A model generated the notes under the pieces. It made no database searches. It saw only the letters and a list, made by a program, of their open reading frames with translations, and had not been told where the DNA came from. From assembly GCA_977017575.1 (NCBI GenBank), contig CDRNVI010000012.1:310001-374000 (forward strand): a DNA stretch of 64,000 bases, read 5' to 3'. Below, piece after piece: positions 1-54,900 of the stretch (positions are counted from its first letter, which is position 1; each line of letters starts with the position of its first letter). Both the position numbers and the translations under genes were made by a program. This stretch comes from Paramoeba atlantica (lineage: Eukaryota; Protista; Discosea).

Positions 1-414
1 GTTTAAGTTCACCGGCCAGTGGACCAGGTAAAGATCCAGGTAGTCGAGTTGGAGCTGGGCAAGGGTGTGGTCGAGTTGGGTGGGGATCGCCTCAGGGGGG
101 TGGGTGTGGGTGACCCAGAGTTTGGAGGTAATGAAGAGGTCGTGTCGGGCGATGGCCCCGGAGCGGAGGAGTTGGGAGAGGGCGCGACCGACGGCGGGTT
201 GGTTGTGGTAGATGGAGGCGCAGTCCAGGTGGCGGTAACCCGCGGCGATGGCGCAGCACACGGCGTCGTGGACCTCGGACTCGGTGGCTTTCCAGGTCCC
301 GAGGCCGAGCGCCGGGATGGTGGCGCCGGTGTTCAGACGAAAGGAGGGAAGGGGTGGTGGCGCACGGTGTGGATGCGTTGCACGCAGTCGGTGACAAGGA
401 GAGATGCGCAACAT
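1..414 (-). CDS. Aldo-keto reductase, N-terminal part (runs off the window edge; absent from the ORF track)
   Basis: Manual minus-strand translation from ATG at 414 gives MLRISPCHRLRA...RLNTGATIPALGLGTWK...GYRHLDCASIY...LFITSKLW...LDYLDLYLVHWP, with the AKR catalytic D, Y, K and H motifs. Confidence 0.9.
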   Translation of the reverse strand, partial: MLRISPCHRLRATHPHRAPPPLPSFRLNTGATIPALGLGTWKATESEVHDAVCCAIAAGYRHLDCASIYHNQPAVGRALSQLLRSGAIARHDLFITSKLWVTHTHPPEAIPTQLDHTLAQLQLDYLDLYLVHWPVNLN

Positions 415-1046
415 TCCGAACGGAAGAGGGATAGAGGGATAAACGGCTAGTAAAAAAGAAGATCAATCTTATTCAGCTAATAAATATAAATATAAATTTT
501 ATAACCTAAACGAATGTGAATAATAGAAATTGTTCATTGGTTGCAGAAGACAATACACTTGCATGAATTTTAGGTGAGGATGAAAGAAGGAAGTTAGATA
601 ACACAGGTAGATCTTCGGATGAGTGCAATACCAGCATGTTATTACCCTAGCAAGGGCATTTAGTGTTTTTTGTCAGCACCTTTGTTCACACAGTACGTAT
701 CTCAACACCTACACCAATAGAGAGGTACACCAAGAACATCTCATCTCAAGCTTTCTGACATTTTCTACCAGCATTCTATCGAAAACTTGAACGAAGAACC
801 TTTTAACTAGAAAATGTACGTGTAGTTGAAAACTTTTTCGTGTTTTCTTGGCATTCCCATTGGCAAGCTCCTGGCCTTCTTTTTCATCAATTCGTAATGA
901 ACCCTCAGAGTCCCATCGCATGAGTCTCCTCAGATGTAGCCTCCTCAGATGAATGGATTAAATTTTACGCTATACACAAGATATACACTACAAACATACT
1001 GTGTAGTCTCCGTACAAAAATTTGTGCTTCGCTTGTTTGTGTACGA

Positions 1047-11262: not shown

Positions 11263-11622
11263 GTAGTAGAAAAATATGCAAGAAAGAAAAGGCTTTCCAA
11301 AAAGGTGTAACAAGAATAACAATAAACACAAGAGAAATATTGAGGAGAAGGGGACCGCGTAACTATTTTCCAAACGTACCGTCACAGCAATTACATCGCA
11401 GTGTAGTGATTATTTCTCAGAATTTTACCATTGCATGAAACGTTTCATTCGCACCCTTCAAATTTTATTGTAAAATATCCAACGTGGTTCATGGTAAACC
11501 CAATAAAATCGCCCAGCACGCCCAAAAACGTACCCGCGTGACAATAATAACCCAACGTAATAGCGAATACCAATGGAGAAAGTTTGTCCACATCAGGAGA
11601 ACTCTCCGCTTTACGAACTTAC

Positions 11623-12408
11623 CTACCCTAGATACTGCTTACACCGCCGTATCTCCTGCGACACATTCGCCGAGGGCTGGACGGCATTCACCGCCGTGAA
11701 ATCCGCCATCGCCGCCTTCCACCGCTCCAACCCCTTATACGCATACGCCCGACGCAACGTCGCCTTCACATTCCCCGGATCCAACTCCAACACCGCACTC
11801 GTATCCGCAATCACCTGCGGGTAGTTATGCGTCTGCGTGTGACACGCCGCGCGGTTATTATACCCCGCCACCTTCTTCCCCACCTCCCCCTCCCCGGCCA
11901 ACTCAATCGCCCGGGTGTAATACCCCATCGCCTGTTCATACCGCCCCCTCCGGAACCACTGATTCCCCACCTCCCGGGCCTCCTCCCCACTCCCCACCCT
12001 CCCCGGGGTCATCCGCTCCAGCCGCTCCCGTGCCCCGCTGCGGCACGTGTTCAGCCTCTCCTGGACCTCCCCGTTGTGGGGGTCGAGCCCTAGCGCCCGC
12101 TCCAGTGCCCGCTCCGCCCCGGGGTAGTCCCCGAGCGCCATACGGGCGACCCCCTCGCGGTAGGGCCCCTTCACCCACCCGGGCTGGGCTGCGGTACACG
12201 CCAGCGCGTCCTGTAACGCCTTCGTGTGCTCGGAGAGGGCCGAGTGGGCTGCGGCCCGGTTGGAGTAGAGGGGGGCGGCCTCGGGGTTGGGGGTAGAGGT
12301 GGTCGAGGGGTTGAGGGCATGGAGGGCTGCGGTGTAGTGGGTGATGGCGTCACGGTGGAGACCGGCACGGAAGGCGGTGTTGCCGAGGGTTTTGTGGTCG
12401 GGGGACAT
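11623..12408 (-). CDS. Two-TPR-domain co-chaperone, kinetoplastid STI1-like (Hop-like, no DP domains)
   Basis: TPR motifs LGNTAF, LYSNRAAA, WVKGPYR, VGNQWFRRGRYEQAMGYYTRAIEL, YNNRAACH and NVKATLRRA. Confidence 0.88.
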   Translation of the reverse strand: MSPDHKTLGNTAFRAGLHRDAITHYTAALHALNPSTTSTPNPEAAPLYSNRAAAHSALSEHTKALQDALACTAAQPGWVKGPYREGVARMALGDYPGAERALERALGLDPHNGEVQERLNTCRSGARERLERMTPGRVGSGEEAREVGNQWFRRGRYEQAMGYYTRAIELAGEGEVGKKVAGYNNRAACHTQTHNYPQVIADTSAVLELDPGNVKATLRRAYAYKGLERWKAAMADFTAVNAVQPSANVSQEIRRCKQYLG

Positions 12409-12817
12409 GGGGGGGGGGTAGAGGGGTTAAGAGGGGGGTGGAAAAAAAAGAGAAAGGGGATAGAGGAGAGGAAAGGAGAGGGGAGGATGGAATGGAGAGG
12501 GGGGGGTGGAAAGAGAGGGTGGGGGTGTGGGTTTTTTAAAGATGTAAGGTTTAAAAGTGATTTTCAGTTTTTGGAGCGTTGAGGGGATGTATTATTAGAA
12601 TGGTTTTTAAAACAAAACGGGACAGCATGTTATGCTGTATACGGCGCTATGTACGATAATGCGTGGTTGATATAATTGTTGAAATATAGATAGAAGAGAT
12701 TGTGTTCAGGCTTTCTGAATTTCATTTAATATACGGGATAAATTTATATACAATATTATGGCATTTCGTTTTAATAAAAATATGGGGAACTAATGTACAT
12801 CACATCAGAATTTCATC

Positions 12818-13351
12818 CTATTCGTCGTCTTCTGCTGCAGCTGTTTCCTCTTCGTCTTCCGCGTTTTCATAAATTGGCTTCTTTCCCTTTACCAGAATGT
12901 CATGGAGAATGGGGGCGTGCTCTCTCCAGTCAGCGGCGTCCTCAGCGAACAAAGGCTCGTGGTCACGCGAGAGCCAGAACTCATAGGCCCCAGGTCGATT
13001 CTTCTTTACGGGCTGGTAATACGGAACGAATTCGGGCCACGGTTTGGCGCCGTACAAAAGTGTGTAGTCATAGTGTCCCAACTTACGGCGTTCTTCAAAA
13101 CGCTCAAAAATATGATCAAAGAGCATTTTTCGGGCGTACCAGTATGCCTTTTTGCACATACTGTGTTCCTCTCCCCAGTTCCCTACGCAGTGCAAGTACT
13201 GGTAGTACGCAATGTAGCCATGCTTGTGGACGCTACCTGAGGTCGCCATTCCATGGCTCTGAGCGAATCGAGGATCAGTGAAATCGGTAAAGTGCGGCAT
13301 GTGGTACTTACGGCGTGGAATCTTATACTTGTGGCTGTCAGGGTGTACCAT
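12818..13351 (-). CDS. COX6: Kinetoplastid-type cytochrome c oxidase subunit VI
   Basis: MPHFTDFTDPRF...YQYLHCVGNWGEEHSMCKK...YQPVKKNRPGAYEFWL...APILHDI matches the remembered trypanosomatid COX VI. ATG at 13351. Confidence 0.85.
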   Translation of the reverse strand: MVHPDSHKYKIPRRKYHMPHFTDFTDPRFAQSHGMATSGSVHKHGYIAYYQYLHCVGNWGEEHSMCKKAYWYARKMLFDHIFERFEERRKLGHYDYTLLYGAKPWPEFVPYYQPVKKNRPGAYEFWLSRDHEPLFAEDAADWREHAPILHDILVKGKKPIYENAEDEEETAAAEDDE

Positions 13352-13815
13352 TGTTAGAGACTTATAGAAAATGGATGAAGACCTACAGAATATGAAAAAC
13401 GCATGCAGTGTAGTTCCCACAAAAAGTATCTAAAAGATTGCGTTTTTAACAATATGAAACTATGATTACATTTCGCTTTCACAAATTTTTAACATGACAG
13501 TTGTATATTAACTGCTTTCATCCAAGCTCATAGAGTTGCAAATAGGGGTACAAAACTATGAAGATTGGATATTTACAAAGCAATTTAGGATAGCGCCCAA
13601 GTTTCATTCCTCTAATACTTTTAAAGAATTCATCCGTAAATATATGGAACGCTGGGGTAGAAAAGTTGGTGTAGAAAAGTTTATGAGTGTGGTAAATAAA
13701 TGTGAAACACTACGAGATACAAAAATTAAATCGAAAATTTAATCACATGAAATTTCTGTGCCTAAAGTCGGCTTCAGGACGCTTCTCGAGGCCTATCTCA
13801 TAGGTGGCTTTTCTA

Positions 13816-15096
13816 TTACTTGAAAATTTTGTAATCCAACACTGGCTTAGTAGCAAACGTCGGTCCCTCGCACGAAAGGTAATCCGTAATTCGTTCCCGC
13901 ATGCTTAAGAGATCCTGGACCTCTTCCCACTCATGGTGCTCTACGTCATCTACAATTTTCATAAGTTCGGGCATGCCTTTTCCTCGAACCACCCAGAAGC
14001 CCACAATCTCTTGCTGAGCTTCCTCACCGATAATCAAGACAGTACCGAAAACGTATTTGTGCAACGCATCCATACGCTGGAACATACCTCCAACGAGATT
14101 TGAGGTCATAAAAACCATTTTGCTAAGTTCGTCATTGTATTTGTACTTCGACCAGAGGCAGGTATAGCCACTTGGGTCGTATTTCTCAAAGAAGAATGGA
14201 GCCGCAATTGTTCGGGTATCATTGTTGGAGTAGCAACGCTTGAATTCATCCATAATAAACGTAGGACTTGGGGGCAATGTGTCCAGCGCTGCTTTCATCG
14301 CCTTCATCTTTAATTTCTCCTCATTGTTGTCATCCTCAAAACCAGGTGGTGCATCCTCATCGTCGGCTTCTTTGGATTTCTTCGCCTTTTCAGCCTTTTT
14401 AGCCTCTGGTTTCTTCTCCGCCTTCTTTTCTACCTTTGCTTCCTTTTTCGCTACTGTGACCTTGGGGGATTCTTGAAGTACCGAGGCGAAGTGGAGTTGG
14501 TTAATGACCGTATCTACGTATCGTAACAAGTGCACGTGACCCTCCTTCAGTGGCTTGCTCTTACAGATACGAAAGAATTCCTCCAGAGCACCTCCGAGAA
14601 CGAGATCGGCAATTGTCACACGCTCGCCCACTAGAAAGGTGCGTGTCTCCAATTGCTGATTGAGCGACGAAAAAACAGTCTTTAGAGTTTTCATTGCGGT
14701 CTCGGTTTGTGTGCTGTTTGTTCCCTTAGCAAGATACCCGAGTTCGGCTCCAATCAACAACTTAACTGCAGGAGTCATTTCGGTACTCACAAGATCTAAC
14801 CAGGCGTCTACTTGGGATTGCTCATAGGCCCCAGTTCCTCCGTAGAGCGCTAAATTGGCGTCCTGTCGCGCGAGATAACGAGCAATCGCGTGGGTTTCGA
14901 AAAGGTAGCCCTCGTCGACTTTCGCCACGGGGACGCGTCCTAAGGGATCGCAGTTCAGGGCATAGGCAACGGTGGCGCTGTCTTTTTCCACTTCAAAGGA
15001 AGGGAGACGGACTTCCACATCAGCATACTTGGCTGCAACCTTTAAAGGCACGAGTCTAGCATCTTCCGGAAACGAGTAAAGCTCGATATGAGGCAT
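13816..15096 (-). CDS. EEF1G: Elongation factor 1B gamma
   Basis: GST-like N-domain (GRVPV, LFETHAIARYLA, QVDAWLD), Lys/Glu linker, and EF1G C-domain (MDEFKRCYSNNDT, FFEKYDPSGY, FMTSNLVGGMFQR). Confidence 0.96.
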   Translation of the reverse strand: MPHIELYSFPEDARLVPLKVAAKYADVEVRLPSFEVEKDSATVAYALNCDPLGRVPVAKVDEGYLFETHAIARYLARQDANLALYGGTGAYEQSQVDAWLDLVSTEMTPAVKLLIGAELGYLAKGTNSTQTETAMKTLKTVFSSLNQQLETRTFLVGERVTIADLVLGGALEEFFRICKSKPLKEGHVHLLRYVDTVINQLHFASVLQESPKVTVAKKEAKVEKKAEKKPEAKKAEKAKKSKEADDEDAPPGFEDDNNEEKLKMKAMKAALDTLPPSPTFIMDEFKRCYSNNDTRTIAAPFFFEKYDPSGYTCLWSKYKYNDELSKMVFMTSNLVGGMFQRMDALHKYVFGTVLIIGEEAQQEIVGFWVVRGKGMPELMKIVDDVEHHEWEEVQDLLSMRERITDYLSCEGPTFATKPVLDYKIFK

Positions 15097-17095: not shown

Positions 17096-18316
17096 TCAAG
17101 CAGCATCCGCAGGTGGCTTTGTGACAGGCACGCTCCGGTACCGCAACCGTCGTTGACAGCGTGAAATCAAAACGGTGATATTTCTTCGCATTGTGGGAAC
17201 TCGGTCATATTCATATTCCATCGCACGATATTGCTCGGACTTTGGCACCTCCCTTCGAGATACGCGTGGGATGCGGCACTTCACATTTCTGTGCGTCTTC
17301 ATCCGCTCATAATGAATCTGGTACAAGTCCTCAGTGGCAATTCGCTCCTTGGGATCCAGTCGCAACATCATCCGAAGCAGCTCGCACTCGTATCGTGTGG
17401 CCGTTTTCTCCAACTGTTGGACTCTCTCCGCAACTCGTTTGCGGTCCCGTTCCAGGTGACACTCCTTTCGGTTGAACAACGTGCGGCCGGATATCATCCT
17501 CGCCAGGACACACCCGAGTGCCCAAATATCAGAGGCCCCACTGAAGTATCCCTGCTCCGTCTCTGGGGCACGATATGGGTACGTACTGACATACTTTCCC
17601 ACCGTATGCCGGGAGTTCTCCTCCCACATACGGGAGGTGCCAAAATCTACCAGTTTCACCTGCGAGAGGTCACGCTGCAGCACAATGTTCTCCGGCTTAA
17701 TATCCCGATGAAGCACCCCATGGTGGTGCATGTGACGTAACCCACACAACAATTGACCAAACAGCACCAGTCGCGTCTCCTCCGGCAACGCCTCACCCCC
17801 ACATTTCGTCGCACTCTGCGCCCGTACCCTCTCATTCAAAAACAAATGCAACGAGCACTCCATCCGTGGCAGCACCAGGTACACCCCGTTATCCCCCTCC
17901 CAGGCCTGAATCAGCTCCATCACATTGGGGTGCCGCCTATCCGGGGCGGTGAAGTAATACAGCACGCTGAGCTCCCGCATCGAGGCCTCACAATCCGCGG
18001 CCTCGTTGAGGAGCTCCTGTTTCACGACCACCTCGGTGCCGTCACGACGACGGGTCGCGGTGAAGACGACACCAAAGGCCCCGTCGTCTCCGAGGTGGGT
18101 GAAATGGTCGTAGGCGTTCGAGGGGTAGACCACACGACGGGTGCCGTGGGGGACGGGGATGTGGGTGACGGAGAAGGGGGCGTGTTGAGGATCTGCGGCA
18201 CGCCCGGTGAGACTCTCGCAGGCCGCAGAGTGGGGGGTGGAGTACGTGCTGGAGGGGGCACCCCCGCGACTGGAGGTGGCGGGGGTGGAGCAGAGACTAC
18301 GGGGTCGTTTGCGCAT
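17096..18316 (-). CDS. Ser/Thr protein kinase (CMGC/MAPK-like, divergent)
   Basis: LGDDGAFGVV, VVVKQE, HRDIKPEN, DFG, STYPYRAPE and SDIWALGC. Confidence 0.92.
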   Translation of the reverse strand: MRKRPRSLCSTPATSSRGGAPSSTYSTPHSAACESLTGRAADPQHAPFSVTHIPVPHGTRRVVYPSNAYDHFTHLGDDGAFGVVFTATRRRDGTEVVVKQELLNEAADCEASMRELSVLYYFTAPDRRHPNVMELIQAWEGDNGVYLVLPRMECSLHLFLNERVRAQSATKCGGEALPEETRLVLFGQLLCGLRHMHHHGVLHRDIKPENIVLQRDLSQVKLVDFGTSRMWEENSRHTVGKYVSTYPYRAPETEQGYFSGASDIWALGCVLARMISGRTLFNRKECHLERDRKRVAERVQQLEKTATRYECELLRMMLRLDPKERIATEDLYQIHYERMKTHRNVKCRIPRVSRREVPKSEQYRAMEYEYDRVPTMRRNITVLISRCQRRLRYRSVPVTKPPADAA

Positions 18317-18526
18317 GGCAGCAGGAGGAGGGGGAGGACAAGGAAAATGAGGTTTTTAGTGTGGGTGGGGTTGTGTGAGATAAAGGGAGGGAAAGAGAAG
18401 GAAAAATATAGAGGAGGTTGAGGAAAGATAGGTTATGAAAGGATTGGGATTACGCGTGGGGGAGATGATAAAGATGAGATAAGAAGCATAATCTAAGGAG
18501 TTTTTTTCAAAGGAAAATACTACTCC

Positions 18527-18914: not shown

Positions 18915-20060
18915 CAGGGGGGTGCACGAAAATATGGGGGGGGTCAAAATTCTTATAACTTGGCCAATTTTGGAAAATCATAGCGTATTCGAGAGCTCTC
19001 GCAGAGTTACGTGTCATGTGCTAATGCGTTTCCCGCACTTTTTAATTTTGTAGAAAAATTAAAAAAATCATGCACTTTTTCAAAGTGCAGAATTCTGCAG
19101 TTTTTTGAATAAAATACTTTTTTTTTGTGAATTTATCGACTTTTTTGATCCTAATACACTACTATGCCCCAGAAAAGGTCATATTCGAATAATAAAAAGG
19201 TGCAGAAACGGAGTAGATTTTGCTATTCGCTTCGTGGGCAACTTAAAGCATCTCATAGGATACATTTGGTTAAAAAAATTGAGGAAACTTATTCTTTTTC
19301 AGCTGTCGCCAAGATGTTTAGGTGTCACGAGGACACTGTCAAGCGTTGGATGCAGCGTTACGAAGAGACTGGTGAGGTCGATAGGTCTCCCTATAAAACT
19401 CGCCAATCTCCTGTAATATCTGACCCTCTGTTGAAGCGAGCACTCAATCCTATTGATCAAGCAACAAGGAATGAAACCTATGATATCGCTTCTTGGGATC
19501 ACCTTCTGAACCTTCTTGTAGGAGAGGGTTTCAGATGCTCCCGTCGCGCTCTGATACGTTCCCTCAAGAAGGAGGGTATCATATCCCGCACAGTCCCCCG
19601 AAACCCTGCACTCACAAAGGAGCACAAAAGGAAACGAGTAGAGCTATGCCAGGAGTTGGCAACATGGACCCCTGCTCAGCTTGAGGCTATCGTCTGGACA
19701 GAGGAGAAAAAATTTACTTGCGGGGGCAGCCGCAAGATTACCTACCTTTGCCGTCGTTCAGACCTCCCAAAGGAGCACGCCGGTAAGCGGGAGAACTTTA
19801 AAGAGTGTTCCAAAGCGCGTGAAAATTGTGTTGGAGAAAAAAGGTGGAAATTGTGGATACTAACATTTTTTTACCAGAAAAAAGACTTGCAGTTGCCATA
19901 TTTACGGTATTCAGGAGAATGCATATACCTGGAAACTACGTAAAACGTAATATCACATGACACGTAACTCTGCGAGAGCTCTCGAATGCGCTATTATTTT
20001 CCAAAATTGGCCGAGTTATAAGAATTTTGACCCCCCCCCATAATTTCGTGCGCCCCCCAG
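18915..20060 (+). mobile_element. Tc1/mariner element, internally deleted
   Basis: About 107-bp TIRs (18915-19020 / 19954-20060), TA flanks, and an enclosed transposase ORF. Confidence 0.9.
19164..19943 (+). pseudogene. Truncated Tc1-family transposase (HTH domains, DDE domain lost)
   Basis: HTH (FSAVAKMFRCHEDTVKRWMQRYEETG), CSRRALIRSLKKEG, NPALTKEHKRKR and IVWTEEKKF (Tc1 WTDEKKF with D-to-E). The ORF ends at the right TIR. Confidence 0.85.
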
Positions 20061-20064
20061 TATA

Positions 20065-20823
20065 CAGGGGGGATCACCAATATCGGGACACCCGACATTT
20101 TTGTGTCATGTGTCCGTTTCACCTCATTTTTGTTGCAAAAGAGAGATCTCGACGCGAATATAATCGGAACGACATTTTGCGCCTATTTAAACACACCTAA
20201 AAAGTAGGGTGTGCACGACAAAAACGATTTTTTTCAAAATTTGCACATTTGAAAATGTGGATTAAAATGTCTTAAAAAGCATTGAAAAAGTTATTTAGTA
20301 TGAAATAACCCCTCCGTTACACTTTCGTAACTCTTCTAACCGTTTTGGGAGGCTCTTCAGAGTCTTCTCTAGGATATCCCGCTTTTCGGTTAGGAGATAT
20401 TCAATAGCCTTGGGTATATAACACTGCTCTTTCCGCAATTCATCATACATGCTGTTTCCCTCATAGACTTGCCTTGATGCACTTCGTGCGCGCTCACAAT
20501 CCGTGTGCCGTAGGATGCATGCTCGGGGGATACATGACGGAAGTTTAATCTATGTCGTTTTCTCATTTGGAACTTAATAAAAGAGAATTGTATCCTTTAA
20601 TAGACAATTTTAACGGGATTTGCACAATTTTTACATAAATTTGCATATTTTTTGGAGATTTGTTTTATTTTTTTTATACCATTTTTTACAAGTGCGTTTA
20701 AATAGGCGCAAAATGTCGTTCCGATCATATTCGCGTCGAGATCTCTCTTTTGCAACAAAAATCAGGTGAAACAGACCCACGGCCCAAAAATGGGAGGTGT
20801 CCCGATATTGGTGATCCCCCCTG
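20065..20823. mobile_element. Tc1/mariner-type MITE, 759 bp
   Basis: 132-bp imperfect TIRs starting CAGGGGGGATCACCAATATCGGGACACC, TA flanks on both sides, no ORF. Confidence 0.9.
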
Positions 20824-35282: not shown

Positions 35283-36770
35283 TCAAATCACAATTTCTGT
35301 CAATTGTGCGGACAAATCACACCCTGTGGTCCTGTCTTCCCACCCACCACCTTCACTTCCTACCGTACCAAGCCTCCTCGACGGACGCATGGAGAGCCAA
35401 TTTCTCACCCTCCCCAAACCCTCCCGCACCCACGTTCGCATCTCTAACGTGTAGTAGTTATGCCAGTTCACCACCTGCGCCGCCACAACCACCACCGGCA
35501 GCACCACAACCATCGACCGCGGACTTTCCAAAGCACTACCCCAGGACCCCACCCCACCCCCAAGTGCGGACCCGAGATTACTCCAAGAGCTCCTAAACGC
35601 CGCACTTAACGGCGCAGCACCCTGCCCCACCCCCGGACTCTCCCACCCAAACACACTCCCGGGGCTCTCCCCCGTACCCGCACCACCCTGACCCCTCCCA
35701 CCCCCACTACCCGAATACGACACCAACGGCGTACTCACCCCTGCTCCCACCCGTTGTTGTGCTCGCATCATCGTAGCGTTACTCCCTCCAATGGTAGTAC
35801 CACTCCCACTCCCCTCGGCCAGCACATCCCGCCATAGGGAGACACACACCCCTTGCAGTACCCTCACCCCCTCCCCCTCCCCCTCACTCCCTTCCCCCTC
35901 CCCCTCATGGGCCACATGGGTATGTGGGTTCCCTTTCACGTTTACTCCTTTTTCCCTCTTACTGTTGTAAGAGCCGTCGTAAGGGGTAACCCGTGAGGGG
36001 GAGAGGGGGGCGTGGGTGGAGGTCGGGGTGGTACGGGGGAGACTCATGGCTTGGGTTTGGCCCTCACGGCTGTGGCAGGGGCTAAGGCTACTGTAAGGAC
36101 TACTGCCGTTGCCATGGCTACCCGCAGCACAACGACTACCCGTAGTACAGGTACTCCCTGTAGTGCGACGACGGCTCGTAGTACCGGTACTACGGGGCGT
36201 AGCGTTACTCTGGGACTCGGAGCCTGGGATACGGTTGTGTTCGTTTCCGATAAGAGAGGGGGGAATGGTTGAGGGGAGTGACGGGTTGAGGACTGGGGTA
36301 TCAAGGGCGTCATGAGAGGCGGCAAAGAGTTGTCCAAGACGTTGTCGGGCGAGAACCGCGTGGTGAGCGGCAACCACCCGGGTTCCGGTTTGGTGGAGTT
36401 GCAGGAGACGGGTGTGGAGGGAGCGCTCGTCGTCGCAGTCGATCAGGAGACCGGAGAGACGACCCCAGCGGGTGCGAAGCTGACTGGGGGCGCGGTGGTG
36501 GGCAAAGTAGTTTTCGGAGATTTTGCCCCAGGAGTGACCGTGGAGTGCGATGGCGCGGAGCAGGGTCCAGTCCTCGTCGAAGGTGAAGGCGGTGTAGCGC
36601 GCGCTGAGACTGACACGGTGGTGGGCGAGGGTTTGGTAGTGGGATTGAATTTGTTTGGTGGAGCGGTCGCCAAAGTGTTGGCTGATTTCTTGGAGTGATT
36701 TACCTTCGTGCGTGAGGGTGAGGAGTGTGGAACTATCTTCTGCACTCCAGTGAAGCTTTCGTATCTTCAT
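35283..36770 (-). CDS. Myb/SANT-domain protein with a low-complexity C-terminus
   Basis: WSAEDSSTLL...RSTKQIQSHY and FTFDEDWTLLRAIALHGHSWGKIS...RAPSQLRTRW. Confidence 0.8.
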   Translation of the reverse strand: MKIRKLHWSAEDSSTLLTLTHEGKSLQEISQHFGDRSTKQIQSHYQTLAHHRVSLSARYTAFTFDEDWTLLRAIALHGHSWGKISENYFAHHRAPSQLRTRWGRLSGLLIDCDDERSLHTRLLQLHQTGTRVVAAHHAVLARQRLGQLFAASHDALDTPVLNPSLPSTIPPSLIGNEHNRIPGSESQSNATPRSTGTTSRRRTTGSTCTTGSRCAAGSHGNGSSPYSSLSPCHSREGQTQAMSLPRTTPTSTHAPLSPSRVTPYDGSYNSKREKGVNVKGNPHTHVAHEGEGEGSEGEGEGVRVLQGVCVSLWRDVLAEGSGSGTTIGGSNATMMRAQQRVGAGVSTPLVSYSGSGGGRGQGGAGTGESPGSVFGWESPGVGQGAAPLSAAFRSSWSNLGSALGGGVGSWGSALESPRSMVVVLPVVVVAAQVVNWHNYYTLEMRTWVREGLGRVRNWLSMRPSRRLGTVGSEGGGWEDRTTGCDLSAQLTEIVI

Positions 36771-38759: not shown

Positions 38760-39027
38760 TTAGTGTACAAAGTAAATAAAAAAATGAAACCGACTTAGGA
38801 AGTAGAAAAAAGCTTTAACTGCAGGACAGCGTCAAAATCATAGGCTGAAAAATGTTTACCTACCCCAACCTTTGGAATTGCATTGTATTTTATGAATGTA
38901 TTCAACAACTCCTTTTTCAAAATTCAGACAAGAAGCATGACGATTTGTTTTCACATACGCTTCATCACTCAAAGTATTTCGGTACCTTTTTCTTTCTTAG
39001 CTTCACACTCTTCCCTTTTCCTCGTGC

Positions 39028-39939
39028 TTACGCCACTTGGGCCATGCGATTCTTCAAGCTTTGGATCTTTTGACGCACCGTGTTCTTGCGATCCTTGAGC
39101 GTGCGCGGGCGCTTGCGGTAGGACTTGGGCTTGTAGTCCGGTGCCTTCGCCTTCGCCCCCTCCTTCTGCTTCTTCTTCATCGGGTCCGCACGAATCTCGG
39201 CATGGGCCTCACGATACATTCCCTCCAGCTTATCCGCCGTGATCCCTTTCGCCACGTACCGACTAAAATGCGCCTGGTACCGCGCCGGGTCCTCCTGCTG
39301 CAACTTCTCCATGTACTTTGCCACATGGAGGCCAAAAATCCGCTCCCGGTGCACCTCCCCGTTCAACGTCTCACTCTCCTTGTCATACCCCGGGAACCGG
39401 GTCTCACTGTGCGGGACGTTCACCCCCCCATCCACCACCCCTTTCATTACGCCAAACACGCGGGCGCCGGTGGTGGTCCGGGTCAGCCCGGTGTCCAGGA
39501 TCGCCTTGAACGGGCGCCGCTCCTCCGCGCGGGTCTCCTCCTCGGGGTTGTAATACCCCCCATCGGGGCCGGTCACCCCGAGGTAGTCCTTATCGAGGCC
39601 GAAGTGCGCCAACGTGCGGCGGGCCAGCAGCAGCCCGGTGCAGTAGCACGCGGCGTAGTTCGTGAGCCCGAGCTCGACGCCGTAGGCCGGGAGCTCGTGG
39701 GCGTAGGCGGCCGCGACCACGCGGTCCCCGGTGAGCGTCGCGGCACAGATCTGCGCCACCACGTCGGTGTTGGTGATGCGGGCGACGAGACGGTACTTCG
39801 GGGTGTTGTACTTGGTGCGGTCCTGGAGGACGAGCTTGCGGCGGGCCTGGTAGTCGGTCTTGCCCTCGCGACGGCGGCGGTACTTGACTTGGTAGCGCTT
39901 GAAGTAGGTGGAGTTTTTGACGACTTTGACGAAGACCAT
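39028..39939 (-). CDS. RPL5: 60S ribosomal protein uL18 (L5)
   Basis: [34 protein letters not shown]...YRLVARITN...[18 protein letters not shown]. Confidence 0.98.
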
Positions 39940-40249
39940 GGGGAGGGAGGGAGGGAGGGGGTGGAGGTGAGAGAAAGAGAAGAGAAAAAAAGGGTGAAGA
40001 GGAGGGAGAAAAAAAGGTGAGGAAGGGATGGAGGGTGGGTAAGGGTGTAGGGGAAATGTTGTGTGGAGGGAAAGGAATACGAATACAGGGTTTTTGATTT
40101 GAAATGTTTTTTTTCTATTTTTGAAGAAAGGTACATATTAAGCTTGTATACAAAGGTTTTGAGTTCAAAAGCATACAAACGTTTTGTGGATGGCCACGTT
40201 AGCGTGTGCGTTGGTTGGCGGATCCATCTGACCCACAACATGAAAATCC

Positions 40250-47629: not shown

Positions 47630-49183
47630 TTATTGAGCTTCCGTCTTGAATGACGAAAACCAGGCACGCGCCGTTGTAAGAAGTTCCTGACATCTGCAAA
47701 CCTCCGAAAAATTAGGACGATGTGTCCGAACAGGAATTGTGTGAACTCGGGGATCGCTTAGTTCAATCGGACAACCTGAATAGCGCAAAATATTACGGTT
47801 TGCCGGACCAGGAACGCCTAACAGAAGCAAAGAACACTTTTGAATGTGTTCCCCCCATTCCTCCAATGTTGTACGGATATCTTCAATCCAACGTGTCTCT
47901 TGGCTTCGTCGTATTTGAGTCCCCGCACTACGGCCACAGTGACCTGCACTGGACTCATGAGTGCTCTGCCTACCGCCTTGCCCTTTTCTAACAACGTAGC
48001 GCTCAAAAGTTCGATGAACATGACAGGTCTTTCCATGAAATATCCCTCCGGAAAAATAACCCCCGTGAAATAAAACAATACACCAGGGAGAGGTACTTAG
48101 CTCAGAGAGAGTTGAAAACAAATCAGGCAACTTGGGGTTCTTATCGGCGTGTAATTGAGCATTTACTTGGCGTAGATACTCTGTCTGAGTCAAACACTTA
48201 ACGTCCTCGTGCGCTGCTGCATTGTACAAGCTGCTGCCTTCTTCTATTGGTGTGTAAGGGTCGGTACTATTGTCGATCGATCTAGATTTATCATTTTGAG
48301 AAATGCCTTCTAAGTTCGTGTCGCTTTCTCCAGGACTCGAGTAAGAACTCTGAAAACACCTCTGCAATGCGATACGCAACAAAAAAGTGTGGAGCTCTAG
48401 AACAAGAATATATTCTCTAGCCTCGTCTGCATTGGGAGATGCCAGATCACTCAATACACATACAATTTGCTCTGAAATCTCAGATGAAGCGCTAATATCA
48501 ATTCTGGAATTAAGTGTAAAATAGCAACGAATTAGAGCAGAATCTGTCACTGCCTCTACGTGACTCAAAGCCTTTATAGAGTGTACTGTACCTGCAGAAT
48601 CGCGTATATAAATTTGATTATCATGATCAGGTAACGTCTGTTTACATCTAATGTGACTCGGGCTCCATAATCCCCACAAGGGAAAAACTTTTCTTGCACA
48701 ATCGTTTTTCTGCGCTAAAATGTCGAGAAAAGATTTATGCATGTGTGGTCTAAGGTCCGCTTTTCCTTTAAACGGAGATTCAAACTCATAGAGAGGATGT
48801 CCCCTATCGAGTTTGTTCGTCGAATTGTCTGTTTGTAAAAAATTGTGAGCAGTGGTTCTTTTCTGGTTTAAAGCGTGTTGATTTTTAAGACTTTGATTTT
48901 GGAGCAGCAGCTCCGTGGTGTCCGTTCTCTCTCTTAAACCGGCACGTTGACCTTTTTTTAGATTCCTGGCTTGCCCTGCCTTTTTTCGCGACAATTTTTC
49001 TTCGGTCTGTAGGCGTTGAATAACCTCCCGGTCTTCTTCGGTCATAATGTTTTCCGTATGTGTTTGAGCCACACTTTTATCGAAATCAATTGCGGAAGAA
49101 AGAGAGGTACGTGACGCTTGCTTTGCTGCTTCATACTTTTCTGCCAAAAGTTGGCGCACTTTTTGAAGCTCAGTCCAAACCAT
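47630..49183 (-). CDS. ANKZF1: Vms1/ANKZF1-like protein (VLRF1 domain)
   Basis: IVLFHGGYFSGGIF...HRTFERYVVRKGQGGRQS...SAGTQIRRSQE...DPRVHTIPVRTHRPNFSEV. First ATG at 49183. Confidence 0.88.
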   Translation of the reverse strand: MVWTELQKVRQLLAEKYEAAKQASRTSLSSAIDFDKSVAQTHTENIMTEEDREVIQRLQTEEKLSRKKAGQARNLKKGQRAGLRERTDTTELLLQNQSLKNQHALNQKRTTAHNFLQTDNSTNKLDRGHPLYEFESPFKGKADLRPHMHKSFLDILAQKNDCARKVFPLWGLWSPSHIRCKQTLPDHDNQIYIRDSAGTVHSIKALSHVEAVTDSALIRCYFTLNSRIDISASSEISEQIVCVLSDLASPNADEAREYILVLELHTFLLRIALQRCFQSSYSSPGESDTNLEGISQNDKSRSIDNSTDPYTPIEEGSSLYNAAAHEDVKCLTQTEYLRQVNAQLHADKNPKLPDLFSTLSELSTSPWCIVLFHGGYFSGGIFHGKTCHVHRTFERYVVRKGQGGRQSTHESSAGHCGRSAGTQIRRSQETRWIEDIRTTLEEWGEHIQKCSLLLLGVPGPANRNILRYSGCPIELSDPRVHTIPVRTHRPNFSEVCRCQELLTTARAWFSSFKTEAQ

Positions 49184-50486
49184 AAGGAAGTAAATCTGCT
49201 GGATGCTAATGAAGACACTATTGTTTGTAAATATGGGATATACCAAGACAGGAGCGCACGCTATTCATGACAAATCAAACTTTGCGCACAAATACTATAA
49301 TTTTGGGTACAGATGGTTCAAAAAAAGAGTTTAGAATTTGATATCGGAGCTCTCAAGCCTCAAAATCACATTTTTGATGTACTTCAACAATTGCGTATAA
49401 TCTATACGTAATGGTTTCATAATAAAAAATTTAAATGGTTCTTAATATGGTTCACAATGGAGGTTCCGGGGTCGAGGGAAATTACAATCACCTCTCTAAA
49501 AAACTCTAAAAACACCTTGATTTACTCTAAGCATGTCACTTCAACTTCTTGACTTACTTGCTTCTTGAGAAATCAAGTTAGTGTTGTTCTTCTGTTGCAT
49601 AGGATGAAAAATGATCAGAAATGTCATCAAATCTTCAGCGACACCTTCCTCACCAGGCGATGACCCAGATTGGACATTGATTCCTCCATTGACTCCAGCG
49701 AAAATTCTCTAATCAGTGAGCATAAATGGAGTGGAGACGGGCTTGTGGCGCACGAGCAGTCATCTGGTAACATATAGGCTCGTAGAGGCACTAAATAGAG
49801 GCACTACGTTCGTAGAGGCACTAAGATCTCGGAGAGGATGGAGCGTCTATGAGGACACTGCAAAAATAAAGGCAAACGTGTAATTTCGGTCGAAGTGAAA
49901 CTAGTATGAACCCCTCTCTTCTCAGGAAAACTATGATCTTGTGGAGGATGAGTTCATAGGCAAAGGTACCACACAAGAAACGGAAACCGCCCGTAAGAAA
50001 GACGACCAGAGGACTCCACCTTGGCGTTCCGGCCTACAGAACCTCCGTACTAACCCCCCCACAGACTCATTAATTCATGAAAATACTGAAAATAATACGC
50101 TGGCCATCCCCGAACTCACATCTAATGAAGTGCGGAGAAATGAAACAATGGAACGCACTCTTCGTAGGCGAATCGAACGCCTGCAAGAGAAACTACGTTT
50201 ACGTATCCAATAACTAAACCTTGTTAGCCGCAGCGGCAAGCAAGAGGCACGGTATGAAGAGCTGACCTACTTCTTCAAAATCAAAGCATCAATTTATTAG
50301 TATTCCAATAAACCGTAAAGACGCTGCTTCTGCAAAATCTACACTCTTCAACGCTAGTAGTTTAAAAAAGACCAAAGGAGCCACTAAAACTAAAATTTCT
50401 TGGAAAAAATAAAAGAAGCTTTTGGTCGATATTTACTACTTACTTACTACAATAGCAACGGACAATTCATCAATTGGATTGAGACA

Positions 50487-51933
50487 CTACTTAGCCATTT
50501 GGGCGCGCTTGTGAATTACGAAGGGTGGAACGCCACGTACCATTGGCTTTTTCCCAGAAACAATATCCAAAGCATGTAAATCAATATAGGGAATCGGATG
50601 TTTCGGCAAGAATGCAAACAATGATTTCGCGTTCCAAGTGCTGCTACAAACTGATTGAATCCCATCTGCAGACGCTTTAGTGATACCCGTCCGGGCCCTT
50701 TCAGCAGGACGTGCAGGAATGCGCACTTCTTCATTCTTCATTTCCTCCTCGGCTCGCATGTCTTCTGGTGGTCGCGATGAAAAAGAGAAAAATTCACTCG
50801 AGCTCCCCAAAGCATCACACTTTCGACGATCACGATCTTTTACTTCGCTCTTCCCCGCGTTTGCAGACCTAATCGTTTCCCCCTCAACCCTATCCACCTC
50901 ATCCCCCGAAACGTCACACAAATCCACCGTTCGGGTAACCCCCACCCCCTCCACCTGTCCCACCCTCCCCTCCACCCACTTCGCCGCCTCCAACGCCGCC
51001 CAATCCACCGCAGACCCTTTATCCACCGCACACAACCTCTCCCATCTCACCGCCTCAACCACCGCTCCCCCACCCCCCCTTCCCCCAATCCCCCCGATCG
51101 CTCCCCCACCCCTTCCCACCCCCTCCCCTCTCTCCTCCCCCCTCTCTCCCCCCGAACCTCTTCTTGTCCCGGTTCCACGTCCCCCTTCCTCCCTCCCCCC
51201 TCTCCCTCTCCCTCTCCCTCCCCCCACCCCCACCCCCACCCTCAAATACCCCCACCCCCCCTCCCCCCCTCCCACGCCCCTGCACCGCTGCATCGTGCGC
51301 TGCACCGCACACACCCCCGGGTGGGTACTCCACCACCACCACGAGCCCCCCGGACACCCGCACGGCCCCCAGCGGGGTCGTCGGGTCGTCCACCACCACC
51401 AGCAGGTCGCGGCAGCCCAGGTGGGGGTAGGCCGTGAGGAGGGCCTCGAGCGCGGGGTCCGGGGACCCACCGGGGAGAGGGGAACGGGGACGGCTGTTGT
51501 CGTTGTGGTTACGGGTGTAGTTCTGAGGAACCGTACTGGCCAGTACCGCCGCACAGGATCCCAGGAAGGGACAGAAGTAGCCGTGAAAGGGGTAGGGGGG
51601 TTGTTGGGGGTAGGGGTGTTGGAGTTGTTGTTGTTGTGGTCCGGGGGAGAGGGGGGGAGGGAAGGGGTATTGGAGTTTGCGTAAGGGGCTGTCGAGGGGG
51701 AGGGGTTTGAGGGCACGGGGTTGGGGGTGGGTTGGGGGATTTGTTGTGGGAAGTAAGGGGTTGGGGAGGGTGGGGTTGTGAAGGAGATCCCAGGGGTGGG
51801 TGTTGGCGTGGTGAAGGAGACGGAGGGCGGTGAGGGCGCCGAGGGAACGGGTGGGGTAGTGGTGGGGAGGGGAGGTTGTGGGGGAGGAGGTGCCAATACC
51901 GTAGACGAGTTTGGTGAAACGGGGTTCGGTCAT
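50487..51933 (-). CDS. Peptidyl-tRNA-hydrolase (Pth/CRS2)-fold protein interrupted by a 1-nt frameshift at 51346-51351
   Basis: Frame A gives KLVYGIGT..HYPTRSLG and DLLVVVDDPTTPLGAVRV. Frame B gives GS....THPGVCAV and YLRVGVG. Removing one G from a G6 run joins them into 481 aa. Confidence 0.6.
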
Positions 51934-54900
51934 GGGGAGAGAGGATGAGGGAGGGGAAAGAGGACGGGGGAAGGCGCCATGGGGGGTTGAATGTAAAGGA
52001 AGGAGATTTACTTTTCCATCTGTTTACAAAAGTTTTTGATAAAACAATCTCTTACATTGCTTTTTTACGATATTCTTATGGAATGGTGGTTTATTAGAAA
52101 TTGCATCGGATGCCCAGCAAACCTGTTGGCAGGCTATCTCTCTATTGCCAGAGTGGAACACGTGCGTATCAATTTGCGACGAATATGAATTGAACACTGG
52201 GAATATCCTACCGAAGGAGAACAACACAGGTTGTTGATCAGAATATGAGCGTACACTGGTTTCGCTGAAGGCGAGTACTCACTGCGCCGAGCCTAGAAGA
52301 CCCTCAACCACCATCCCCACCGTGCGACAACAGTTTCATACGATGGACCAACTCTGCCAGGAATTTCCCCCGGACTCAGCCCGCTCGGTCTTCAGCAGTG
52401 AAGGGGGGAGCCGAAGCTACCGCACCCTCCTTCCGGCTTGCGCACTTCAATAGGAACTCTCGTCCTTGTCGGAGCGCGAGGCCTTAATGAGGCGCCTGCT
52501 TACCATGGAGGCGGTGTGGGGAGCATACGTCGTCCAGAAAATCTGCAAGGCGTGCATAGCCCTCCTCAATGGGCCCACCTTCGCGGGGGAGCCCAAGGTA
52601 TGTGGGGCGGCCCTGGAGGCTTTAGGATAGTTAAAATACCTAAGGTTGCGGCTCAACGCGACCAAATGTACGCTGGCCACGCGCCAACGCAGCCTCCTCT
52701 CTGAGTTCTCACAAACCAGAATGGCGCACTCCCCCGGAGGGGTTAAGCTACTAGGGGCTGTGAGACAACCATGGGGAAGGCCCCGTCAGCAAGAAAACTA
52801 GTCTGCATGAGGCAGATACAAAACGTTAATTACACCAAGCGGATGAACCCGTAGCCCAACAGGCGGGAGCACTATACGTGATCCTATATGGGAGACACCT
52901 GCGGTACCGGGTTGCCCTGACATCCAAGCCTGAGCTCCAATACGTGCGCGGCACAACCCTTTGAAACGAGAAGTTCTGTGTTCATGCACTGGATTGCAAA
53001 AAGGTGAGAGGGAAGACCCACCTTCTAAATTAGAAGGTGCCATTAGACTAATGGCAATAGGGGTGGTCATTCAGAAGGGTAATGCCCAGATCGTACAGGC
53101 GGCGGTTTCAGGACTGGTACCGCCGCGGGGTACTATAACTGGGCGAGGGGTTTGGGGGAGTGACGAAGAATTCCTAATGAATTCGAAGGCTCCTCTTCCT
53201 TCTACGGGCCATTCTTCAACTCACATCCTTTTTTTCGCCGCGTATTGCAGATCAGGAGCAAGCATGACGAACCAATTATCGGCGCGAAACAATCGGCAGA
53301 GGCATGTCAATGTTCATGCGAGGAGTAAGGTCGGAATTTCATCAGAAAGTGTAAATAAGCAAGAAAATATCCTTGAAGCGATTCGCTGTGCGAGCGAACT
53401 GTTTACAATGGTACCGGTTCTTGATGCAGCAGAACAAAATGACGAGGGCATACTTTCCCCTGAAAGTGGTGATCAGCCCTTTGTTTTGTAAAAGACTTCG
53501 TATTAACCACCAGTAGATAAGTTTGTGAAGGAGATCTCAGGGGTGGGTGTTGGCATGGAGGAGGAGACGGAGGGCGGTGAGGGCGCCGAGGGAACGGGTG
53601 GGGTAGTGGTGGGGAGGGGAGGTTGTGGGGGAGGAGGTGCCAATACCGTAGACGAGTTTGGTGAAACGGGGTTCGGTCATGGGGAGAGAGGATGAGGGAG
53701 GGGAAAGAGGACGGGGGAAGGCGCCATGGGGGGTTGAATGTAAAGGAAGGAGATTTACTTTTCCATCTGTTTACAAAAGTTTTTGATAAAACAATCTCTT
53801 ACATTGCTTTTTTACGATATTCTTATGGAATGGTGGTTTATTAGAAATTGCATCGGATGCCCAGCAAACCTGTTGGCAGGCTATCTCTCTATTGCCAGAG
53901 TGGAACACGTGCGTATCAATTTGCGACGAATATGAATTGAACACTGGGAATATCCTACCGAAGGAGAACAACACAGGTTGTTGATCAGAATATGAGCGTA
54001 CACTGGTTTCGCTGAAGGCGAGTACTCACTGCGCCGAGCCTAGAAGACCCTCAACCACCATCCCCACCGTGCGACAACAGTTTCATACGATGGACCAACT
54101 CTGCCAGGAATTTCCCCCGGACTCAGCCCGCTCGGTCTTCAGCAGTGAAGGGGGGAGCCGAAGCTACCGCACCCTCCTTCCGGCTTGCGCACTTCAATAG
54201 GAACTCTCGTCCTTGTCGGAGCGCGAGGCCTTAATGAGGCGCCTGCTTACCATGGAGGCGGTGTGGGGAGCATACGTCGTCCAGAAAATCTGCAAGGCGT
54301 GCATAGCCCTCCTCAATGGGCCCACCTTCGCGGGGGAGCCCAAGGTATGTGGGGCGGCCCTGGAGGCTTTAGGATAGTTAAAATACCTAAGGTTGCGGCT
54401 CAACGCGACCAAATGTACGCTGGCCACGCGCCAACGCAGCCTCCTCTCTGAGTTCTCACAAACCAGAATGGCGCACTCCCCCGGAGGGGTTAAGCTACTA
54501 GGGGCTGTGAGACAACCATGGGGAAGGCCCCGTCAGCAAGAAAACTAGTCTGCATGAGGCAGATACAAAACGTTAATTACACCAAGCGGATGAACCCGTA
54601 GCCCAACAGGCGGGAGCACTATACGTGATCCTATATGGGAGACACCTGCGGTACCGGGTTGCCCTGACATCCAAGCCTGAGCTCCAATACGTGCGCGGCA
54701 CAACCCTTTGAAACGAGAAGTTCTGTGTTCATGCACTGGATTGCAAAAAGGTGAGAGGGAAGACCCACCTTCTAAATTAGAAGGTGCCATTAGACTAATG
54801 GCAATAGGGGTGGTCATTCAGAAGGGTAATGCCCAGATCGTACAGGCGGCGGTTTCAGGACTGGTACCGCCGCGGGGTACTATAACTGGGCGAGGGGTTT

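Follow-up and report, generated by a model that had tools for sequence, protein, structure and literature searches.

Mirrored G- and C-rich compositional islands on gene units in a 64,000-nucleotide stretch of the Paramoeba atlantica assembly

Six islands and the genes they cover

In a stretch of 64,000 nucleotides from the Paramoeba atlantica assembly GCA_977017575.1 (contig CDRNVI010000012.1, positions 310,001 to 374,000 of the forward strand), about one gene in six is converted to a GC-rich block of ~1 kb in which the two halves possess an opposite G/C strand bias. This whole stretch is called the window hereafter and all coordinates refer to it, except those given with L003 or L004, which belong to allelic contigs. 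The overall GC content of the window is 45%. A 300-nt scan for blocks of at least 58-75% GC returned six of them, at 1-450, 11600-12500, 17700-18400, 35300-36700, 39000-40000 and 50800-52000, which represent five complete islands and one half island with a length of 0.9-1.45 kb and a GC content of 60-75%. They are spaced 4-18 kb apart in a gene cluster without strand switch, in agreement with the clustered spacing of a few kb to ~18 kb that an earlier note on this DNA had read from the sequence. On the + strand, all six run from C-rich to G-rich. The genes under the islands (encoding a TPR protein, a protein kinase, a Myb-domain protein and RPL5, together with an unassigned open reading frame, ORF) all lie on the minus strand, and their sense strand has a C-rich 5' end and a G-rich 3' end. 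Since the island pattern is its own reverse complement, a gene-oriented and a symmetric arrangement look the same within the window.

The island on the TPR gene serves as the type example. This gene (11623-12408, minus strand) is intact and encodes an STI1/SGT-like protein of 261 aa (Pfam TPR_1, 4.6e-26) that is homologous over its full length to the syntenic orthologues P0001 (51% identity) and P0002 (49%). The left arm of the island (11600-12150), C-rich on the + strand and G-rich in the sense direction, covers the 3' two-thirds of the gene up to the stop codon (11623) and has 79% G at the four-fold degenerate sites of the sense strand. The right arm (12180-12590), G-rich on the + strand and C-rich in the sense direction, covers the 5' third of the coding sequence (CDS), with the ATG at 12408, as well as the leader, and has 66% C at the four-fold sense sites. 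In between, a flip zone (12156-12243) contains the minimum of the cumulative skew at 12180 (codon 76) and the highest GC content (0.75). Following the + strand, GC skew amounts to -0.37 to -0.46 over 11600-12100 (-0.46 at 11700-12000; GC 0.59-0.70), passes through 0 over 12100-12300, where GC peaks at 0.75, and reaches +0.45 to +0.94 over 12200-12600 (+0.94 at 12400-12600). These values bear out the C-rich tract of 11650-12080 and the G-rich tract of 12170-12590 described in the earlier note, which had the G-rich half continuing ~150 bp past the start codon; the leader is 180 nt long, C/T-rich and without sense-strand AG, and the corresponding purine (G/A) tract on the + strand extends ~180 nt beyond the ATG. 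Sense-strand AG is lacking over the whole of 12409-12634, ~226 nt upstream of the start codon, so that the trans-splice acceptor must be located at or beyond 12634, near the end of the RNA contig of the upstream gene (12632). Owing to the islands, the automatic gene caller fragments the TPR gene and an aldo-keto reductase gene in the public assembly (L003 and L004 calls).

The latter gene carries the half island at the left end of the window (1-450; GC 0.65-0.67, skew +0.36). The arm, G-rich on the + strand, corresponds to the sense-C-rich 5' half of this minus-strand gene, as judged from its aldo-keto reductase-like translation, and the remainder lies left of the window. The half-island of the earlier note is indeed part of a full one: its other half was recovered in the allelic contig, in which the full island (L004 13250-14400) is C-rich and then G-rich in the sense direction and covers the CDS (~13287-14331) end to end. 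Island 3 (17600-18490, minus-strand gene) spans the 5' 60% of the protein kinase gene (CDS 17096-18316) and a leader of ~170 nt, and flips at ~18091 (codon 75). Island 4 (35300-36730, minus-strand gene) spans the entire Myb-domain ORF (35283-36770) and flips at 35962 (codon 269). This ORF is ~175 aa longer than its orthologues, the extension falls within the G-rich arm and the end of the ORF coincides with the island edge; hence, the island has probably lengthened the reading frame. The entire RPL5 gene (39028-39939, minus strand) and ~140 nt of leader are covered by island 5 (39030-40080), which flips at ~39579 (codon 120); the share of G and C among third codon positions (GC3) in RPL5 is 0.87, compared to 0.43-0.45 in its orthologues.

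Island 6 (50840-52010, minus-strand ORF) possesses the strongest skew (~+/-0.8), flips at 51400 and overlaps ORF 50487-51896, for which neither a Pfam match nor a stable codon periodicity was found. The region is possibly non-coding, largely non-coding or disordered, and the strongest skew would be as expected for unconstrained sequence. Recurrence of the pattern in the kinase, Myb and RPL5 genes had thus been described correctly, but the 'Pth-like' gene listed along with them does not fit the ORF of the sixth island. The gene meant is probably the one at 47630-49246 (minus strand, 538 aa), which contains the only such domain nearby (bVLRF1, Vms1-type peptidyl-tRNA hydrolase or release factor, 3.8e-40) and lies outside any island. 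The right edge of island 6 abuts a 1747-bp tandem array (51776-57310). Each unit of this array has a mildly C-rich patch close to where it starts and a short G-rich peak on the + strand with a G-quadruplex (G4) motif (e.g. the peak at 53500-53700, with a GC content of 61-65% and a G-C excess of +40%); the array is not a typical island. The islands furthermore create spurious long ORFs on the opposite strand or in other frames, for example on the + strand at 17231-18421, 39037-40020 and 50680-51684.

The flips were quantified by a step statistic, in which the G-C excess over the left 400 nt is subtracted from that over the right 400 nt, with 200 shuffles of 50-nt blocks as a control. The window holds five true C-to-G sign changes with step values of 0.37-0.88; in the shuffles the mean maximum step was 0.26 and the largest 0.40, and four of the five flips lie above every shuffle. 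By the same statistic no G-to-C sign change was found in the window, every large negative step being an island edge, and the mirror symmetry claimed before, with G-rich strands pointing outward from a central point, holds for five of the five complete islands. Skew per arm is +/-0.4 to 0.9, which is far from the about equal G and C of a strand-symmetric outcome. The flips are 60-250 nt wide and located at 42-54% along each island, between box-like arms of 400-770 nt each; the G content of the outward strand amounts to 43-48% over ~400 nt and is back to background by ~700 nt. No common motif is visible at the five flip points, and an Rfam scan of the window gave no match. An assembly artefact was ruled out, since three DNA read sets as well as a second assembly contain the islands and the genes have remained intact.

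A feature that is new relative to the earlier note is that the islands start in 5' leaders and end at stop codons. All six have their 5' edge in a C/T-rich leader, 0-180 nt before a start codon, for which we roughly estimate a probability of ~1e-6 under random placement of the six 5' edges. The idea of gene-embedded islands consequently needs amendment: they do cover coding sequence, but they are not freely placed within it. The 3' edges of the TPR, RPL5 and aldo-keto reductase islands lie at the stop codon (within ~70 nt), and the stop codons of TPR and RPL5 are genuine by alignment with orthologues; the kinase island, covering only the 5' 60%, ends 500 nt ahead of the stop codon. In the available RNA contigs, which are undirected and shallow, coverage of the TPR gene is confined to its last 150 nt, that of the TPR island is nearly nil and no contig starts in the island; the span of this island (11600-12590) falls between the RNA contig end at 11595 and the end of the contig of the upstream gene at 12632. 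At L004 18450-18560, ~4.8 kb beyond the left end of the window, the called genes switch from + to -, forming a convergent strand-switch region; no island was found at this region or in the recovered 4 kb of the opposite cluster.

Composition at neutral sites, in relatives and between alleles

Island genes have a GC3 of 63-87%, compared to 35-59% for other genes, and along each of them the third-position skew changes from -50 to -87% into +50 to +100%. At four-fold sites, the sense strand of the 5' halves contains 59% C, 16% G, 9% A and 16% T, that of the 3' halves 64% G, 17% C, 9.5% A and 10% T, and the background 28% A, 19% C, 20% G and 33% T. Four-fold G+C thereby reaches 75-81% in islands versus 39% in the background, and all codon positions are affected on a scale of 1-2 kb. 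One base is gained on one strand while A and T are both depleted, to 0.10-0.16 A and 0.09-0.10 T at the four-fold sites of the outward strand. A flip in keto skew, as envisaged in the earlier note, did not appear: neither at four-fold sites nor in the A and T profiles is there an A/T flip matching that of G and C. Codon positions 1 and 2 follow the skew as well, less so in RPL5 and strongly in those ORFs that are least constrained, and GC is also raised at these positions. Net gains of C or G at these positions agree with the arm in the TPR and kinase genes, and the translations of the aldo-keto reductase gene and ORF469 are first Pro/Thr/His-rich and then Gly/Arg/Glu-rich.

As a codon control, we performed 500 synonymous-codon shuffles in which the amino-acid order was kept, with the C3-to-G3 flip as statistic. 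In the five island genes of the window the flip lies above all 500 shuffles (z = 5.1-10.9), whereas ten background genes, including RPL27A and EF1-gamma, have z values of -1.4 to +1.8. Codon or amino-acid bias is therefore not the cause. This result, combined with the block shuffles, substantiates several claims made from the letters alone: that RPL27A and EF1-gamma lack the pattern, and that expression-driven codon bias does not explain it, the islands being DNA-level features. The flips also go beyond the expectation from composition and amino acids. The signature of translational codon bias, common to genes with high expression and constant along each of them, was not found.

Within the islands, G4 motifs on the + strand are all located in right arms and those on the - strand all in left arms; only four lie outside the islands, all of them on the + strand and within or next to the 1747-bp array. 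Neither G-runs nor G4 motifs are in excess in islands over composition-matched shuffles, so selection for them was rejected as a cause and the motifs are a consequence. Methylation or CpG-island logic was rejected too, since CpG is depleted nowhere, nor is it enriched (observed/expected 0.53-1.05 in islands versus 1.00 in the background). An inverted repeat or cruciform was discarded, the TPR island containing only one pair (17 nt, 82%), and so was selection for an RNA in which the C-rich 5' half folds back onto the G-rich 3' half, with a minimum free energy of -423 kcal/mol and z values of -0.4 (global shuffles) and +0.1 (local shuffles). With no excess of G-runs or G4 motifs, no inverted repeat and no added RNA stability (z ~0), selection for structure is not indicated.

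The TPR protein matches best with proteins encoded by megabase-sized metagenome contigs (51% and 49% identity), and its best named match is an STI1-like protein of Novymonas (42%). RPL27A is 86% identical to that of the metagenome lineage, 78% to that of the free-living prokinetoplastid strain PhM-4 and 60-62% to those of trypanosomatids. From these protein matches the genome appears to be that of an early-branching (prokinetoplastid-like) kinetoplastid. The loci of two relatives are syntenic (RPL5, ArfGAP, Myb, Rad10, kinase, EF1-gamma, small ORF, TPR, RPL27A). In these 41.6 kb of syntenic loci no islands were detected, the maximum GC being 53%, and the TPR, kinase, Myb and RPL5 orthologues have a GC3 of 0.39-0.46. 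As judged from this comparison the islands are lineage-specific, and the question of the earlier note whether orthologues keep them is answered in the negative. RPL5 is only 60% identical to its orthologues, which share 90% among themselves, compared to 86% versus 94% for RPL27A, which has no island; by this measure protein divergence is inflated in island genes.

For an allelic comparison we used contigs of read sets from other runs and a second assembly, ERZ24900291 (loci L003 and L004), of the same organism. L003 and L004 carry the islands and are 99.5% identical to the window, with 63 single-nucleotide polymorphisms (SNPs) over 19.6 kb. SNP density is 11.8/kb in the two islands covered versus 2.3/kb outside (Fisher 3e-8). 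In the heterozygous stretch, 2.2% of third positions differ in island CDS versus 0.15% in other CDS, a 15-fold increase (p = 2e-5), and positions 1 and 2 differ at 0.60% versus 0.07%, next to 0.71% for non-island non-coding sequence; the same variants recur in independent read sets. The first 10.5 kb of the window contain 0 SNPs relative to L004, with ~3 SNPs/kb in adjoining stretches, and span three tandem paralogous genes (884, 911 and 884 aa). This looks like a loss-of-heterozygosity tract, and mitotic recombination or conversion thus probably occurs here. Two further allelic differences were noted. At 12289-12291, within the TPR island, the alleles differ by a whole codon (GGG versus AAA on the + strand, CCC versus TTT in the sense direction), a three-base multinucleotide variant. 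At ~20418 the allelic contig has ~756 extra bases (L003 reverse complement 19622-20377), an insertion polymorphism within a transposon-rich stretch (18.9-21.3 kb); SNP density is high across the transposon region.

Possible sources of the bias

Each island is a compositional domain of ~1 kb that results from a substitution bias at the DNA level; selection on codons, protein, RNA structure or G4 motifs did not produce it. Within either half, the strand running 5' to 3' away from the midpoint is driven to G from A and T alike. This drive affects the untranslated leader as well as all codon positions, drags the protein sequence along and is confined to the lineage; as the islands are hypervariable between alleles, it is still active. 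The islands are very likely the footprint of neutral, strand-asymmetric mutation or repair.

The source of this footprint may be recombinational repair at break or conversion hotspots, a variant of GC-biased gene conversion (gBGC), to which we tentatively assign a probability of about 0.4. It is favoured because it would be the one known class of processes that raises GC at all sites on a 1-kb scale, raises diversity and forces amino-acid change. A local GC rise, raised diversity and forced amino-acid change have been tied to biased conversion (PMC7403616, PMC2997560, PMC2817419), and the islands display the GC rise at neutral sites and all codon positions as well as the raised local diversity of hotspot GC peaks. 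In the proposed scheme, breaks would recurrently be repaired, or genes converted, at fixed hotspots tied to particular gene units, with repair synthesis running outward from a narrow central zone. Heteroduplex mismatches or lesions would be resolved toward G:C with a strand preference, for instance when a G-protecting base-excision repair of G.T and G.A mispairs keeps G in the new strand and remaining mismatches are restored by nick-directed (nascent-strand-directed) repair, which would yield GC enrichment and a mirrored skew of the observed sign. G-rich DNA that is prone to R-loops or G4 may subsequently draw more breaks, and such a self-reinforcing state would explain why genes are either islands or not.

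Several points weigh against recombinational repair as the source. Known biased conversion is strand-symmetric, so the mirrored skew would need an extra repair assumption, and another such assumption would reverse the sign. The sharp midpoint step (60-250 nt) and the box-like instead of decaying arms are unlike a conversion-tract length distribution, and the differences between the two alleles are not polarised (10 weak-to-strong versus 10 strong-to-weak). A hotspot model leaves the registration on genes unexplained (6/6 5' edges in leaders and three or four ends at stop codons). Finally, meiosis may be absent if the lineage corresponds to a Perkinsela-like endosymbiont.

Alternatively, the islands could be sequence-encoded, self-reinforcing initiation zones (replication origins and/or divergent RNA polymerase II starts) that are registered on genes and whose machinery writes the mirrored G bias, which we regard as unlikely. 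As to origins, fixed and efficient sites of bidirectional replication initiation would leave a leading/lagging mutational asymmetry in the first few hundred bases on each side. The negative-to-positive G skew and the arrangement of G4 motifs are exactly those reported at the early-S MFA-seq/KKT1 loci of Leishmania major, also within unidirectional clusters (PMC7511235), the polarity agrees with the pattern around human CpG islands (PMC2817419), and the strict partition of G4 motifs over strands and arms as well as the sharp midpoint step fit in. Replication asymmetry alone, however, would not lift neutral-site GC from 39% to ~78%; T skew does not flip along with G skew as it does in L. major; and there is one island per ~10 kb, in CDS and registered on genes, compared to one origin per chromosome at unit boundaries in L. 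major. The midpoint is moreover the GC-richest spot, without an AT-rich unwinding element, and the Trypanosoma brucei origins mapped by SNS-seq are intergenic with the opposite G4 geometry (PMC13179062). The skew inversion is therefore origin-like in its polarity, which is that of the L. major early-S loci, and not in its G4 geometry compared to T. brucei, and origins as the source are doubtful. Divergent initiation by RNA polymerase II, as at CpG islands, with G-rich non-template R-loops in which damage to the displaced strand drives it toward G, is an improbable source. The geometry of mammalian bidirectional CpG-island promoters was reportedly treated by Ginno et al. in 2012. That of the islands is alike (PMC2817419), substitution of G for any base in an exposed strand would fit the bypass of abasic sites by a dC-inserting polymerase, and the 4-18 kb spacing fits short transcription units. 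Still, flips in the middle of the CDS of essential genes such as RPL5 would give 5'-truncated sense RNA and antisense RNA, and the islands begin at gene leaders and do not have their centre upstream of genes. The CpG ratio (observed/expected) is not elevated (0.53-1.05 versus 1.0 in bulk), and the likeness to the GT-rich promoters of T. brucei put forward in the earlier note breaks down on the lack of T enrichment and of keto skew. The RNA contigs, a weak argument given that they are undirected and shallow, are ordinary mRNAs of neighbouring genes and none starts in the TPR island.

The registration on genes itself would be accommodated by RNA-linked mutagenesis on the processed mRNA unit, either through transcript- or cDNA-templated repair or conversion, or through R-loops bounded by trans-splicing and polyadenylation cleavage. 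The islands match gene units, with six out of six 5' edges in leaders, the TPR, RPL5 and aldo-keto reductase islands ending within ~70 nt of the stop codon, and the TPR island (11600-12590) fitting between the RNA contig ends at 11595 and 12632. Yet, there is no known reason why the two halves should have opposite skews, the kinase island ends 500 nt before the stop codon and the Myb island seems to pass the ancestral stop, which makes this explanation improbable as well. Selection on mRNA or protein, be it codon optimisation, 5'-3' pairing, G4 or i-motif elements or low-complexity tails, is close to excluded. In trypanosomatids, expression is associated with high GC3, and one of the island genes is RPL5, but RPL27A and EF1-gamma are without the pattern and codon selection can account neither for a C3-to-G3 switch nor for the changes at positions 1 and 2. 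In addition, diversity is raised 15-fold instead of reduced, and there is no extra RNA-fold stability, no excess of G-runs and no conservation in orthologues.

Known systems and significance

The closest likeness in another kinetoplastid is found at the L. major loci where early-S origins coincide with AcH3, base J and KKT1 (Damasceno et al. 2020, PMC7511235). These have the same G-skew polarity, with G4s on the reverse strand upstream and on the forward strand downstream, and show the switch even in unidirectional clusters; they differ in being single sites per chromosome at unit boundaries, on a kilobase scale, with a T skew that flips and without a reported block of 75% GC, whereas the islands occur once per ~10 kb within genes, have no T flip and are extreme in amplitude. 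Human CpG islands (Polak and Arndt 2009, PMC2817419) are likewise GC-rich blocks of ~1 kb with mirrored substitution asymmetry outward, and the excess of weak-to-strong substitutions inside them was attributed to recombination, a gBGC signature alongside bidirectional asymmetry; they are promoters in a methylated, CpG-depleted genome, in contrast to the present islands, which cover CDS where CpG is depleted nowhere. The GC3 peaks of yeast (PMC2997560) and the runaway GC of gerbils (PMC7403616, PMC6573468) also represent local, lineage-specific GC rises at all codon positions, with composition-forced amino-acid changes and faster protein divergence, patchy and on a ~1-kb scale (PMC7403616, PMC2997560). 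These are strand-symmetric, however, and none has an inversion in the middle; 'GC skew' in the gerbil papers denotes GC bias and not G-versus-C strand skew (PMC7403616, PMC6573468). The SNS-seq origins of T. brucei (PMC13179062) share strand-specific G4-prone sequence around a centre, but with plus-strand G4 upstream, opposite to the islands, and in intergenic poly(dA), whereas island centres are in CDS. Grasses (PMC2895627) possess a subset of genes with very high GC3 and a shift in C3 versus G3 preference along the gene, with a skew of ~0.05-0.1 compared to 0.5-0.9 and a sharp inversion in the islands. In the literature searched no description of such islands was found, and the Perkinsela genome paper makes no mention of skew. 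Measured against that literature, the islands are new in strength and shape, as mirrored compositional islands of unusually high amplitude that are registered on genes.

To our knowledge, kinetoplastids lack sequence-defined promoters or origins, and the forces acting on their genome composition are poorly understood. Here, a local process pushes neutral sites to ~60% of a single base and overrides the amino-acid sequence in housekeeping genes. The same process makes all G4-prone DNA of the region, save that of the tandem-array stretch, and does so with strict strand polarity. Whether its source is break repair or the start of replication or transcription, the islands provide a map of where this process acts, and a natural experiment on the extent to which proteins can be made to evolve by biased mutation or repair. 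Were they to be initiation zones, origins or promoters would become readable from sequence in a group without a sequence definition of either.

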